DNA of 64,000 nt from Iphione sp. A-MEVVRFRX5. Its lineage: Eukaryota. The first letter of the stretch is position 1. Each line of letters starts with the position of its first letter. Location: assembly GCA_976226885.1 (NCBI GenBank), contig OZ320317.1, forward strand, positions 31,372,001 through 31,436,000, in the 5' to 3' direction. A program made the translations under genes and the position numbers. The notes beneath the pieces were generated by a model. That model was not told the origin of the DNA and did not search any database. It saw nothing but the letters and a program-made list of their open reading frames with translations. Below, piece after piece: positions 1-5,809 of the stretch.

Positions 1-184
1 TGGCTGTGAGAGGAAAGTAATGCCAATGTTACGCACACTATGGAACTGACGGTATTGAAAGAGGACGGAAGAAATTTTCGGCATTTGTAATTTATCGTTC
101 GAGGAATGACAATTTACCTGTTTGAGTAGTTACCTTAAAACAGCTTTTTAAGAGAAAAAGGGTGGCTGCGCTATGATAACTTAC

Positions 185-298
185 CTTGGCTGTAGTGGAA
201 CACGTGCGTATTGGGCGAGCAAGCACGGACAGATGTCTTCGTCAAAGTGTGAAGAGGTAGCGGAATGCGCCGGGGGCTGAGCTGCTCCCCTTTTTAAA
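185..298 (-). promoter_or_regulatory. Minus-strand core promoter plus ATG-less first exon (~266-185) of a gene leaving the window on the left
   Basis: On the minus strand: CCAAT (~370), TTTAAAAA (298-291) and Inr-like gcATTcc ~32 nt downstream (~266). Donor ccaag|GTAAGT at 184 and acceptor tttcctctcacAG at 5-4. Confidence 0.55.
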
Positions 299-729
299 GG
301 GCTCAGCGCGTCACTGCTCGCGTCAGGCCTTGGCGTTGGGCCAACGCGGGAGGTTGTAGGGTGAGATTGGAGTTCTAACATAGTTTGTTGTGATACTATA
401 TTAAACATAGAGTCCCAAGAAAAGCCTTTAAACCCCTGTCCTGTCACTGTACGTATTTATTGTTATAACAGATTTTATTGGATGAACCCGACATGTTGAT
501 ACCACTTGAAAAAAAGTAAACAAAATGGCCGACATGTTGTCGATTCAATGAAAGAAAGAGGATTTTTTGTACGAAAAACAATCTCATTCAGAACGACAAT
601 TTTAAAACAAATCAAAAATGAAGTAATTAACCGAACTCTTGCATATATGATAATAAGGACACCTTAAATAATCTGTATGAGACGTTTGTTCGCATCGTGA
701 CGAATGTAAACAAAACGAACGTGTATGGA

Positions 730-780
730 CCGGAAGTGGCGAAAGCAGGCATATGATTGGCCTAGGCAGGTCACGTGGTA
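730..780 (+). promoter_or_regulatory. Probable proximal promoter of the recombinase gene
   Basis: CCGGAAGT (ETS-type), ATTGG (reverse CCAAT) and GTCACGTG (E-box) cluster 25-70 bp upstream of ATG 803. Confidence 0.5.
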
Positions 781-802
781 CAAAATTTCGTCTGCTGCGA
801 AC

Positions 803-1166
803 ATGGCAAAGTTCAGCAAAGGCGAATTATGTTATTTTTTTGACGCAAGTGTCATCGTTGACGATGTTTATAAGCCTCCAGGTCTAGATTTGTATGTGTA
901 TGATGTCCGAGACATAAATACGGGACAGAAAAGCACTGCTGCGGTATACCAACTGAAGAAAACAGACACTGTCACCTTCGATTTGGGTTTTGATTTCGAT
1001 GACGATGACTTCGAGGATGACAAACCAGCACAGAAGGTAGACGAAACTAAGAAAGATAATGGCCGTTTTTATTTGCCGGAACAAAATCAAGTAGATGAGA
1101 TCAAAAAGGAGAGCAGCAAGAAAAGTACGTGCGAACAGACCAAATGGGCCATCAAGATTCTACGAG
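803..1166 (+). CDS. Crypton tyrosine recombinase, exon 1 (N-terminal beta-rich module, acidic FDLGFDFDDDDF tract, start of STCEQTKWAIKILR motif)
   Basis: The ORF is open from ATG 725, but ATG 803 (gcgaacATGGca) has better context and lies downstream of promoter motifs. Ends in cgag|GTAAGT donor at 1167 (phase 1). Splicing to 1289 gives WAIKILR-D-WLVAVGF in frame. Confidence 0.8.
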
Positions 1167-1288
1167 GTAAGTGTCAATATATGAAACCTGCACATAATAC
1201 ACTAAGTCATGGACATTACTTCTATTTAATGAATAAAGTCAACAAAGTGGTATTGAATACTTAAGGACAAACTTGATTTTTTTTACAG

Positions 1289-1505
1289 ATTGGCTAGTAG
1301 CAGTAGGGTTTTCTGCTGAATTCGAGGAACTCCCTGCCAAGGACCTAGCCGCCAAGCTCGAAAAATTCTATGCTACTGTCCAGACGAAATCATTGGAGAT
1401 GTACTCAAAAAGCGCGATGAAGAACATCCGTTGTGGCATTCAAAGGCACTTAACATCGCCGCCATGGAGCCGAAACATCAACATCATGAATGACACTGAG
1501 TTCCG
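1289..1505 (+). CDS. Crypton tyrosine recombinase, exon 2 (core-binding region: LEKFYATVQTKSLEMYSKSAMKNIRCGIQRHL)
   Basis: Acceptor ttttttttacAG at 1287-1288 and donor cg|GTAAGA at 1506 (phase 2). Both phases match the flanking exons. Confidence 0.88.
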
Positions 1506-1680
1506 GTAAGAATATTGCAGAAAAAAAAAAAAAAACATACATGCCTAGCAATCTTGTATATAAGACTCAAACATGGTTGGTGCGCCAATAACATTGAAAC
1601 TGTGCAATTAATGGGTGGAATGAAACATCCCAAGAATGTGTTGTCTTAAAATTTTTTTTTCTCTTTTTTTTTTCAATCAG

Positions 1681-2650
1681 GCAAGCGAATATGGCCTATA
1701 ATGGTTATATCGCTAAAATTCGTAATTCGGGTAAGGACAAGACAGCACACAAGCCCCTTATCGAACCCGAAGATGTCCAGCTCCTGTACGATCGTATATT
1801 CGTGGACACACCCCGGGGCCTGCAACGGAAAGTATTCTTTGATGTATGCTTTCATTTTGGTCGTAGAGGCCGAGAGGGCCTTCGTGAACTGAACAAGGAA
1901 TCCTTTGTGATTGCCACTGATGCTTCTGGAAAAGAATACGCTACCATGGCATATAACGAGACAGAAAAGACGAGATCGGGCCTGAAACACGATGAAGAGG
2001 ATGAGGTAAAAACGATGTATGCCTTACCGGAGGATCCCAAGCGTTGTCCTGTCACCTCTCTTCGCCGTTACCTCTCCCTGCTGAATCCCGTCTGCAATGC
2101 CTTTTTCCAGAGACCGAAGCGAAGTTACGACTCTAGAAGTACAGTGTGGTACGACAACATGCCTCTTGGCATGAATACACTGTACAATATGATGCAGTCC
2201 ATGTCGAAGGAAGGAGGCCTCTCCCGCCTGTACACCAATCACTCGATAAGGCGGACCTGCGTAACCACTTTGGACAGAGCTGGATTTTCCGCCGAGAAAA
2301 TTCAGTCCGTGACGGGCCATAAGTGTCAGAAATCGTTGGAGCCCTACATGGGAGGACCAACAAAGCAAGTCAAGCAGAATATGTCCAAAGTTCTCTCGAC
2401 ATATGGCAAGAATGCAGAGGAGGTGCAAGAAGAAACATGCGATGCTGTCGTGTTGTCCCAAGCAGACCAACGCCATTCCGACGATCAGCTGACTGTGCCA
2501 ATCGTCGAGTCTCCATCACCCAAAAATCTTCCAATCGCCCCAGTCCAGAACACAGCAGTAAATTTGTCTAAAGAAGACATTTGTAATGCTCTTTTTTCAG
2601 GAAAGACGTCGCTGGTTAATTGTACTATCAACATAAATTACGCAAAGTGA
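1681..2650 (+). CDS. Crypton tyrosine recombinase, exon 3 (catalytic DUF3504-like YR domain)
   Basis: Acceptor (t)n-caatcAG at 1679-1680 joins FR-QANMAYNG in frame. Motifs: FGRRGREGLREL (catalytic R), YTNHSIRR (HxxR), VTGHK (H), SLEPY (Y nucleophile) and C-terminal LFSG..NCTININ. No stops. The joined CDS from 725 is 442+217+970=1629 nt = 542 aa + stop. Confidence 0.92.
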
Positions 2651-3067
2651 AGCTAAACAGAGACGTAGTTCTGAACTGCATTGAATCCGCCGGGCAACTG
2701 TCCCAAGTCACGGAAGTTCACGCGAGATTTGAACTTTTTACCGCGAAAATGATAAAAAAGATTTTCACTTTTTAGTAACTTTTCACAGTATTGAAGAGAA
2801 TTAACCCAATAAGTACACCATATGTATTCTTGTTCGAAAATTGTGTGTTATTTCCCTTTCAGAGGCACATCTAAAACTTAATCCAATGAAAATTGTCGTT
2901 AGATTGTCAGTGCGTAATAAACATCCAAGATGGCCGCCAAACCATTCGAAGTGAGTTTTTGCCTTGTACAAGAAGAACATTTAGGGGAAAATAGGTCAAA
3001 TAAACTTGCCATTTAGACGCAAATAGATATAATAATCGTTCCAGCAAACATATGGCTAGATAAGAAC

Positions 3068-3201
3068 AGCAATTAACCACTTTATTTCGTGACAGGTGGG
3101 GCGATCCAGTCGCTCAGGCCTCGGGCTTGGACTGCGTCCAAGCCCTCGGCCTTCGCGACTGGATCTCCCACACCTGTCACTCTATGCCGTTGTTAATTGC
3201 T
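3068..3201. repeat. 134-bp imperfect hairpin at the 3' end of the Crypton
   Basis: Nested inverted pairs agcaattaac/gttaattgct, gtgacaggtg/cacctgtcac, gatccagtcgc/gcgactggatc and ggcttgga/tccaagcc. Confidence 0.9.
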
Positions 3202-3427
3202 TAGCCCTCTTTGTTTGCAGATGCAACGACCAGTGTAATAGCTTAACTTTACGCCACTGGCAAAAATTAAGGAACCGACGCCACAACCGATAAAACTTAG
3301 GCAGTAAAAGCGAGCCGCCGCAAGAACGACAAGAAGGACCGCACATGTTAATTACTGGTGGGCGACGGATGCAGGTGTGCGGACAGTTCAAAGCGAATGT
3401 CAAACCTGAACGAGAGACGCAACGAAT

Positions 3428-3880
3428 CAGTGCAGGGCTAATGGTGGCGCCCGCCGACAAAGGAAGTCGGTATCAACCTCACAAAATTTCCAATTAAAGT
3501 CGTGCTAAATAAGAACCCTGGGAACAACGGCGGTGTGGAAGGCTGTTGATAAAGGCAAGGGGTCACCACGCCGGCATTACCACCAAAGTTACGCCAGGGG
3601 ACAGGAGCACAGAGCGATGGTCTGTTCAATCGATGGCCTATCTAGACGCCATTTAGTCCGTCATCGCAGGTCTATTGGTGGCGCCCGCCGACAAAGCAAG
3701 TCGGTATCAGCCTCACAAAGTTCAAATTAAAGTCGTACTCAATAAGAACCCGTGGAACAAACGAGGTGTGGATGGTTGTAGATAAGGCAAGCGGTCAGCA
3801 GGGCGGCATGTAGCACCAAATTTACGGCAGGGGACAGCCGGTTCCATCGATGGCCTCTCGAGACGCCATTTCGACGTACA
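3428..3880. repeat. Two diverged direct copies of a ~234-bp unit
   Basis: tggtggcgcccgccgacaaag at 3442 and 3676, colinear for ~200 bp with many substitutions. Confidence 0.85.
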
Positions 3881-4575: not shown

Positions 4576-5060
4576 ATTGCGGTCATTAGGCAAAGAAAAG
4601 AAATGTGCTCATTATGGAAACTCTCAACGTCATATCCACCCAAAAAACCAGAAATCCAGCCATAGGAAACCCGACCCCAACCCAACATTCAATAATTTGT
4701 AGATCGCCTTAAAAATGTACATCGATTTCAACTATGAAATAAGTCGCCCACCAACGAGATGGGGATGGCAGCAGGGAGAGAGCGAGAGAAAAAGTGCAGC
4801 CGATGTAGTGAATGAGGGAGGGAGGAAAGGAGGGAGGAGGAGTCTATCAATATTAGGAAGCCATCACACGCCCTGGCCACACATTATACGGATACACCGG
4901 GACACGCGCGCTTCAAAAGCCTATTAATTAAATAGCCCGTGAAGCGCATCATTGCCAGGCACGGTACCATATGCCTACAAATTGTTAATTACTTCGCGCC
5001 CGGAAGTGCAGCGATAACACCAGTGCGGGGGGCATGGTCTCCATCATGGCGATTATGGCG

Positions 5061-5143
5061 ACTCCCCAGGTGCGCGTGTCCTCGGCCCGCCGTCTGGACT
5101 ACACTCCTCGGGTGCACGTGTCCTAGGCCCGTCGTCGGAACTA
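5061..5143. repeat. 42-bp tandem duplication in a CpG-rich patch
   Basis: actccccaggtgcgcgtgtcctcggcccgccgtctggacta vs actcctcgggtgcacgtgtcctaggcccgtcgtcggaacta. Confidence 0.8.
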
Positions 5144-5809
5144 TACCGCCGGTTTTTTTTTTATGGCAGACGTAACGTCATGACCTCATGGAAACTGTGG
5201 CTATCTTCGCTTGACAATCGACAGATACCCCGGTCCCATTTCCCAACGTATCAACGAGTTTGTAGTAGTGTCACTGACCTTTTGATATATGGCACTTGCT
5301 TCCCCCCCCCCCCCCCTTCCCCCGGTCGCGATGGCGCCTAAAGCGGTGCGTGTCTACTTTACATTCTCCGCTGATGCCTCCGTCCCCTCGCGCAGTTTAC
5401 CTATCTGAACACATCTAATATAATATCCTCCATAACTATTAAACTTGGCGACACGTCCTGAAATAGGTACATAAATAGGTATTTAAGTATTGCAGATGTA
5501 CCAAATTAAACCACAGGGTGCGGACATACCTTAAACACCATTTCGGTGGGCCAGGACGTACTGACGGCTTTTAAGAGCAGACCACGTGGCGTGACGGGTA
5601 AGGCCGTAGTGTGACGATAATAATCGGTGGCAAATTATATCATACTCCGACCTTTTCTCGTGATCTTTTCCCTTCACAATCTCTACGCGTTGTTGTTTTG
5701 TTCCGTCTGTTGTCACCTCCAGACATAACTATCGGTCTGTCGTACACTCACTTGAAGCGAGAGTCGCAAGGCATAGCAAGGAGAAGATGGTGGAAGTTGA
5801 AGGACAAGT

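Follow-up and report, generated by a model that had tools for sequence, protein, structure and literature searches.

We report here that a 64,000-nucleotide stretch of the Iphione sp. A-MEVVRFRX5 genome (assembly GCA_976226885.1, contig OZ320317.1, forward-strand positions 31,372,001 to 31,436,000; hereafter the window) holds, with high confidence, a complete autonomous Crypton, putatively of the DUF3504-bearing animal CryptonA kind, which was inserted very recently and cleanly. A preliminary description made from the letters of the window alone had placed an intact, intron-containing Crypton tyrosine recombinase at 725-2650; the gene does lie within that interval, but the element that carries it reaches from 372 to 3204 (contig positions 31,372,372-31,375,204). 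Every Crypton feature that could be tested was found in this unit: a recombinase as the sole protein, an R-H-R-Y tetrad, absence of long terminal repeats (LTRs), terminal inverted repeats (TIRs) and target-site duplications (TSDs), dispersed copies with sharp ends, and derivatives that keep those ends. As judged from sequence, the locus is a transposon copy and not a domesticated gene. Outside the genome, the proteins closest to its recombinase come from echinoderms, bivalves and a hydrozoan; they carry DUF3504 and are 24-51% identical to it. The assignment to CryptonA is a putative one, made from DUF3504 similarity. The element and its noncoding parts are as follows:

372..3204, + strand: the whole autonomous Crypton, 2,833 bp including a G at both ends, one of which is the target's
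372..455, + strand: 5' terminal cis region (GTTCTAACATAG...CCCCTGTCCTGTCAC), the only 5' part retained by non-autonomous derivatives
440..451, + strand: CCTGTCAC(T)NTA motif, with a direct repeat at 3173-3184 and an inverted one in the left palindrome arm (~3090-3097)
3068..3201, + strand: imperfect palindrome of 134 bp, found as a self-match and as inverted repeats, ending 3 nt before the element end

The boundaries can be read to the base from comparison with other copies in the assembly, which is of chromosome scale (1.18 Gb in 89 contigs). The Crypton starts with GTTCTAA at 372, its 5' end reading TTCTAACATAG..., and stops with GCTTAG at 3204, its 3' end reading ...TTAATTGCTTAG; homology to copies on other chromosomes or at other sites (L002-L006 and L008) begins and ends sharply at these same bases, and the flanks are unrelated between copies, as seen in 19 of them. 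The genome-wide survey of copy number and identity proposed in the preliminary description returned at least six full-length copies besides that of the window (L001), giving a compared set of seven, and about 55 elements with this type of 3' end, where a control pattern gave none. The nearest full-length DNA copy, L002, lies on the same chromosome 49 Mb away and is 82% identical (the best non-self match over 2.5 kb among the best-scored candidates); five further full-length copies are 68-72% identical to the window copy. Four copies are intact (L001, L003, L004 and L005) and three are decayed, L002 by a C-terminal frameshift, L006 by frameshifts and L008 by two stops. The recombinase family as a whole is large and diverse, with 1,788 first-look candidates for the third exon of the gene, about four-fifths of the 124 best scored being stop-free.

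End-only searches additionally recovered non-autonomous derivatives of about 670 bp that carry both ends and share with the autonomous element only its first 75-84 nt and last 142-154 nt. Because these derivatives keep the ends only, they delimit the sequences required in cis and show mobilisation in trans; by this measure ~80 bp at the 5' end and ~150 bp at the 3' end are needed in cis. The two ends are likewise the noncoding parts that stand out between copies whose synonymous sites are saturated, the 5' end at 75-88% identity and the palindrome at 89-96% in most copies, against introns and untranslated regions at ~48-60%, which amounts to noise. A structured 5' end was considered and ruled out by a folding z-score of 0.26. 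What links the two ends is the 8-12-nt CCTGTCAC(T)NTA motif, present near the 5' end and in both palindrome arms and kept in all full-length and non-autonomous copies, which makes it a candidate recombinase binding site. A repeat search found no LTR, split direct repeats or TIR in the element, the 12-nt motif alone joining both ends, and neither the open reading frame (ORF) list for 372-3204 nor Pfam searches of the three exons revealed a second protein of the reverse transcriptase, RNase H or methyltransferase type, which sets the element apart from DIRS, Ngaro, PAT and VIPER.

The insertion itself can be dated and reconstructed because the element sits inside a copy of another repeat, of which two parts flank it (no strand assigned):

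1..371: left part of the host repeat copy, which extends a further 867 bp beyond the start of the window; at least nine other copies match these 371 bp at 100% identity
3205..7352: right part of the host repeat copy, with 97-99% (496 bp) and 98-100% (3.65 kb) identity to at least 35 copies on many chromosomes

The preliminary description had seen the surroundings as relics, a view that does not hold for the immediate flanks, which belong to a very young dispersed repeat with at least 40 copies at 97-100% identity on many chromosomes (2,431 first-look candidates). Eight sister copies of this repeat are empty at the exact point of insertion and read ...GAGATTGGA-G-CCCTCTTTG... (GATTGGA-G-CCCTCT), the empty-site sequence being ...GAGATTGGAGCCCTCTTTG..., whereas the filled site in the window reads GGA/GTTCTAAC...GCTTAG/CCCTCT, with slashes at the junctions. 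The insertion is thus exact, with neither duplication nor deletion of the target, and element end and target share only G (or AG). Upon removal of the element in silico, the host copy becomes colinear with 10 sisters at 99.2-99.7% identity over 3,234 bp, and its private substitutions number five (0.15%), in the same range as those of its sisters. The insertion of the Crypton is younger than this 0.15% of private change, and it is, by these comparisons, recent, clean and conservative. Of the two possibilities left side by side in the preliminary description, a recent insertion or a domesticated recombinase, the former is borne out by the 0.15% divergence and at least eight empty sites, and the latter gives way before the conserved mobile ends. 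Across 19 copies the target is biased in composition immediately past the 3' end of the element, with a pyrimidine at +2 in all 19 and at +3 in 17, an A at +5 in 14 and an A at -1 in 12. As for the host repeat itself, its copies share a 3' boundary at ~7352, the window copy is shorter on the 5' side than its sisters, an internal duplication (~3432-3654 versus 3666-3871) is 79% identical, and none of its ORFs has a Pfam match.

The gene and its transcript signals have the following parts:

803..1166, + strand: exon 1, with a conserved MAKFS start; holds the N-terminal barrel and, after it, an acidic linker and the first part of the core-binding helix
1167..1288, + strand: intron 1, GTAAGT...TTACAG, 122 nt, phase 1
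1289..1505, + strand: exon 2, the N-terminal core-binding part, QRICH1-domain-like and conserved in paralogues
1506..1680, + strand: intron 2, GTAAGA...AATCAG, 175 nt, phase 2
1681..2650, + strand: exon 3, with the catalytic domain and, past a disordered linker, the conserved C-terminal tail; stop TGA at 2648-2650
2916..3004, + strand: two AATAAA signals (at 2916 and 2999), upstream of the palindrome

The two GT-AG introns with matching phases proposed in the preliminary description were recovered both by direct reading and by comparison of the seven copies. At the first joint the g of 1166 and the at from 1289 form GAT, and at the second the cg of 1504-1505 and the g of 1681 form CGG, so that the spliced frame 803-2650 is stop-free and encodes 516 amino acids. 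The longer product of 542 residues that had been allowed for, with a start at ATG 725, was rejected, as positions 725-802 are frame-shifted or unconserved in all six paralogues and MAKFS at ATG 803 is conserved; the true start is almost certainly ATG 803. GT and AG are found at the same two positions in all seven full-length copies with differing intron lengths, and the intron sequence is unalignable between copies that are ~70% identical (48-60% identity). Joining of exons 2 and 3 rebuilds the family motif PPxxRxINIxxDxxFxxANxxxxG with exact spacing, and external homologues align across this joint in 92 of 120 cases and across the first in 22 of 120. Both introns are accordingly supported by comparison, and the position of the AATAAA signals suggests that the palindrome is probably not part of the mature mRNA. 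The view of this gene as the sole undecayed coding sequence in the 64 kb held up to a rough check: no other ORF of at least 180 amino acids occurs in the window, and four ORFs of 134-172 amino acids are without Pfam match, a check of this kind being one that would miss intron-rich genes.

The identification of the product as a Crypton tyrosine recombinase is upheld by both profiles named in the preliminary description, by a Cre/Xer-like predicted fold and by the lack of any other ORF, LTR or TIR in the element. In Pfam searches exon 3 matches DUF3504 with an E-value of 4.7e-15 (56 bits, for a cut-off of 29.7) and Phage_integrase at the cut-off (4e-6), and exon 2 matches the QRICH1-domain PF25561 below its curated cut-off (7.6e-4). 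The motifs pointed out in the preliminary description are all present in the spliced protein (GRRGRE, NHSIR followed by a further R, TGHK, and LEPY within SLEPY) and supply, with a lysine, the catalytic set R256, K290, H381, R384, H407 and Y416 of the 516-residue chain. These residues are conserved in an alignment of 46 sequences that includes other genomes, where (in exon-3 numbering) K96, H187, H213 and Y222 do not vary and R61/R62, E65 and R190 hardly do; R62 is the putative catalytic Arg I, assigned by analogy of spacing to Cre. HSIRRT and TGH align in phmmer with the HxxR and GH boxes of XerA, and sequence searches of the PDB gave marginal matches to XerA and integrases, for which the fold search was used to obtain firmer ones. 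Exons 1 and 3 were folded separately with AlphaFold. The exon 3 model (pLDDT 82, confident over residues 1-245) matches Cre/Tre best in Foldseek, at an E-value of 1e-6, and also matches XerA, XerH, the integron integrase 2a3v, the Tn1549 integrase and human QRICH1 (9hjt_H).

Two further parts of the protein are conserved outside the catalytic domain. At the N terminus, the exon 1 model shows five strands at residues 9-53, with residues 1 to ~55 forming a barrel (pLDDT ~80); this module has no Pfam match and no usable Atlas match, and its fold matches in this model of moderate confidence are weak (Tudor, chromo-barrel, PWWP and other SH3-like folds, E-values of 0.02-0.1). It would be a small barrel of SH3-like type, perhaps a Royal-family member, and is found in at least 150 Crypton copies of the genome; weak evidence of this kind suggests a possible role in tethering the recombinase to nucleic acid or chromatin. 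At the C terminus, the last ~30 residues (NTAVNLSKEDICNALFSGKTSLVNCTININYAK, window 2551-2647) are conserved after a variable disordered linker; paralogues keep the tail, and relatives elsewhere keep its LFxG...N...N pattern.

Substitution rates, a further check suggested in the preliminary description, place the protein under purifying selection. The window copy and L002 differ by a dS of 0.76 and a dN of 0.056 (ratio 0.07); in comparisons of the window copy with the remaining lineages pS is saturated at 0.75-0.83 and pN is 0.11-0.15, so that the ratio is not computable; L004 and L005, on different chromosomes, differ by a dS of 0.08 and a dN of 0.009 (ratio 0.11). Across paralogue comparisons dN/dS falls at 0.03-0.07, and the saturation of synonymous sites indicates that the paralogues are ancient. 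Where the other five copies show no variation, a single amino-acid change (E141K) is private to the window copy, compared with 18 in L002 and 30 in L008; therefore, its lineage has been under purifying selection until near the present. As a separate observation, the private changes of L002, L005 and L008 include many R-to-C, R-to-H, R-to-Q, S-to-L and A-to-V replacements, as CpG deamination would give, a pattern that hints at methylation of silenced copies.

An old lineage (nearest copy at 82%, dS 0.76), a recent insertion and a single copy together point to excision and reinsertion and not to copy-and-paste amplification, and a non-replicative move is most likely on these comparisons. In the mechanism that we propose, the copy's own protein would have moved the element: the recombinase would synapse both ends and excise the element as a circle, in which the palindrome-bearing 3' end would abut the 5' end to form an attachment site, and this site, with the palindrome read as duplex, cruciform or hairpin, would then recombine with a loosely defined target, re-entry proceeding by conservative breakage and joining without target duplication. 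Recently landed and lacking a close sister copy, this element is a good candidate for an animal Crypton that still moves by cut-and-paste, and the chances that it is active or mobile at present appear to be close to even.

Several points weigh against this account. A recent insertion would look intact whether or not its protein works, and the window copy does carry the private change E141K. The absence of a sister copy could mean that the donor is unassembled or lost, and the genome search scores the best candidates only, even if a near-identical copy would be expected at the top of them. No match to a head-to-tail (circle or tandem) junction was found in the assembly, which is nonetheless neutral on circles. 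Resemblance between target and 5' end is weak, at 2.72 matches for 1.92 ± 0.30 expected (n=18, z ~2.7), and the pyrimidine bias is the firmer target result.

Among the alternatives, the one that survives best is that of a structurally intact but immobile copy, which would have moved once, possibly in trans by a related recombinase, would be intact because it is young, and may be silenced or subtly defective. We consider it possible but on the unlikely side. Mobilisation in trans of such ends is proven by the non-autonomous derivatives, hundreds of related recombinase genes are open in the genome, and E141K could be read in its light, yet the single private change of the window lineage, against 18 in its sister, speaks of strong purifying selection until near the present, and nothing is damaged in the catalytic residues, at either pair of splice sites or at either end. 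Less probable still is a replicative move or an arrival from outside, with a donor that is unassembled, on the other haplotype or lost later, or with horizontal transfer. Chlamydomonas Cryptons did gain copies despite clean excisions (PMC9977147), the low dS of L004 and L005 on their different chromosomes implies that copy gain occurs among the Cryptons studied here as well, and the restriction of scoring to the best candidates leaves room for a donor. Against it stand the best non-self match of only 82% over 2.5 kb and the chromosome scale of the assembly.

The 3' palindrome was examined in an alignment of 30 distinct copies, including families whose recombinases are 63-70% identical to that of the window copy. 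As single-stranded DNA it folds with a free energy of -51.3 kcal/mol (z -12), its centre CTTGGA-CTGCG-TCCAAG is conserved in sequence, and 96.4% of the alignment cells are paired. Double-sided changes occur in 30 of the 52 pairs (118 cells), a level reached by none of 500 shuffles and compared with 3-8 pairs in slid controls; this covariation shows that base pairing of the palindrome matters. Identity to the window palindrome is 89-96% in five of the six full-length copies and 82% in the decayed L006. One-sided intermediates are rare, with ~14 G-U cells versus ~28 A-C cells and hence no G-U excess; because of this and because both AATAAA signals lie upstream of the palindrome, the data argue for pairing at the level of DNA rather than in the mRNA. 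A TC/TC mismatch (GGCCTCGGG versus CCCTCGGCC, window 3119-3151; alignment columns 59-60 and 84-85) and a G-T pair (columns 21 and 124) are conserved in nearly all 30 copies, and resemble deliberate hairpin imperfections.

Long palindromes also occur 3' of homologous genes elsewhere. Two loci of another assembly carry them with 76-77-nt arms at 360-600 bp past the stop (L086, 4776-4932, and L087, the latter with two in tandem at 5012-5166 and 5191-5353), Saccostrea cucullata has one with 71-nt arms 200 bp past the stop (L088:4662-4807), and a less tight one with 90-nt arms lies 2 kb past the stop in Amphiura filiformis (L089:6013-6196). In these other genomes the spacers are 3-4 nt and the sequences are unrelated to the window palindrome. 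No description of such a terminal palindrome for Cryptons was found in the literature searched.

With covariation showing that pairing matters as its basis, we put forward tentatively, and as a proposal that may well prove wrong, that the palindrome would be the functional recombination site of a whole Crypton clade and would act in a folded state (hairpin or cruciform), as attC does for IntI. If true, these would be animal transposons with structure-specific rather than sequence-specific tyrosine recombination, and, taken with its recent single-copy insertion, the window copy would represent a minimal tyrosine-recombinase transposon that works in an animal, consisting of a 516-residue protein and ends of ~80 bp and ~150 bp. 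A folded site would also explain why the target is loose, why the ends are asymmetric (hairpin at the 3' end, no structure at the 5' end) and why palindromes persist downstream of homologous genes in another assembly, a brittle star and an oyster although their sequences are unrelated. An opposing view holds that the palindrome is no recombination site at all but an RNA-level element, such as a 3' untranslated hairpin or a terminator, or a self-perpetuating palindrome homogenised by intramolecular repair. It does lie on the sense strand downstream of the gene, and templated repair can keep the symmetry of a palindrome without selection. We nevertheless regard this view as improbable: gene-less non-autonomous derivatives keep the palindrome, which ends 3 nt from the element end; its conservation of 89-96% persists despite saturated synonymous sites; both AATAAA signals precede it; the lack of a preference for G-U (~14) over A-C (~28) is contrary to selection on a sense-strand RNA; and long palindromes that differ in sequence occupy the equivalent place in relatives from elsewhere.

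Three side observations concern the copies and their arrangement. One locus (L042, G000:C11:67021763-67025557) holds two 3' palindromes of different subtypes, opposed and 2.5 kb apart (720-862 on the minus strand and 3310-3452 on the plus strand), one of which adjoins exon 1 of a Crypton copy, in a configuration that resembles nested or adjacent elements. The non-autonomous copies L067 (G000:C2:111790031-111791308) and L068 (111734441-111735718) are 100% identical, flanks included, and inverted ~55 kb apart, and look like a recent inverted segmental duplication rather than two insertions. Several recombinase genes are also paired at short distance (1-2.4 kb), inverted or in tandem and with equal scores (G000:C15:20415860-20418650; C10:29690180-29693168; C4:113580487-113583843), for which paired insertions or products of recombination by the recombinase are possible meanings.

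Among known elements, the closest in kind are the animal CryptonA elements Crypton-1_SP, CryptonA-1_SK, CryptonA-1_OL and Crypton-1_NV (Kojima and Jurka 2011, PMC3212892). Like them, the window element has a single DUF3504 tyrosine recombinase gene and no reverse transcriptase, LTR, TIR or TSD; introns occur in both, as do end-only non-autonomous derivatives, and many divergent low-copy lineages coexist in marine invertebrates. According to that study, animal Cryptons are devoid of every kind of terminal repeat, and its text does not use the word palindrome; the window element differs from CryptonA as described there in its covarying 134-bp 3' palindrome, in the CCTGTCAC motif at both ends and in its conserved N-terminal beta barrel. 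The Glomhoppers, a CryptonA subfamily of the Glomeromycota (PMC13465315), are likewise catalytic DUF3504 recombinases in many non-identical copies with and without introns, but their boundaries and repeats could not be defined, whereas the ends, empty site and cis regions of the window element are base-exact.

For behaviour, the nearest comparison is CryptonF-1_cRei of Chlamydomonas reinhardtii, which its authors count among the first Cryptons to have been observed in activity (Lopez-Cortegano et al. 2023, PMC9977147); its insertion and excision are clean and take place at a short target that is similar to its terminus. The window element shares its clean, duplication-free insertion and its short, loose target, in keeping with the Goodwin model of recombination between element end and target. 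It differs from that CryptonF in Crypton group, domain architecture and host kingdom, and also in target: the 5-nt terminus CACCG of CryptonF-1_cRei closely matches its target CAYCG, whereas the window element shares only G/AG with a target that is pyrimidine-biased. Activity of CryptonF-1_cRei was seen directly in mutation-accumulation lines, whereas that of the window element is inferred from one young insertion.

The comparison with integron attC sites and the dif-like sites of CTX phage is one of likeness in working only. In each case an imperfect palindrome is kept by pairing and not by sequence, with conserved unpaired bases (in the window element the TC/TC mismatch) and an adjacent tyrosine-recombinase gene; the window palindrome is about twice as long as an attC site. 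Here, in contrast to attC, the host is a eukaryote, the best fold matches are Cre/Tre and not IntI, and single-stranded or cruciform use would hold by analogy.

With KCTD1, KIAA1958, ZMYM2/3/4, QRICH1 and WOC, the domesticated genes of Crypton origin, the window gene has in common DUF3504 and a QRICH1-domain fold (by Pfam and by the structural match to 9hjt), but those genes are single syntenic loci with an incomplete tetrad and no transposon ends, whereas the window gene has the full catalytic set and lies in a recently mobile unit. That it should itself be a domesticated host gene of the KCTD1, ZMYM2-4, QRICH1 or KIAA1958 type, under host-level selection, is very improbable: a very low dN/dS over an ancient divergence, conserved introns and the DUF3504 and QRICH1-domain similarity, with its fold match to QRICH1 chain 9hjt_H, would agree with it, yet the gene sits inside a unit whose ends are common to non-autonomous derivatives, in a host repeat diverged by 0.15% whose sister sites are empty, it retains all catalytic residues where domesticated DUF3504 genes are without the full tetrad (PMC3212892), and Pfam finds no fused host domain such as BTB or zf-MYM.

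The reading of the locus as a recently inserted autonomous Crypton bears on a family that was defined in 2003 on sequence grounds, in which direct observation of movement comes from a green alga only (PMC9977147), and for which the ends, target and mechanism in animals have so far been essentially undescribed. Three results go beyond that literature: base-exact ends with an empty site, a terminal palindrome with covariation, and signs that an animal Crypton moved recently and without replication. Since the locus combines an intact gene, exact ends, filled and empty sites and natural deletion derivatives, it makes the Crypton mechanism directly testable, and the covarying terminal palindrome points to a recombination site; the questions thereby opened to test are excision as a circle, the att site and cut-and-paste movement in animal Cryptons. 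A compact tyrosine-recombinase transposon of this type is also a possible tool, and the element bears on the origin of DUF3504 host genes (ZMYM, QRICH1 and KCTD1) from elements such as this one.

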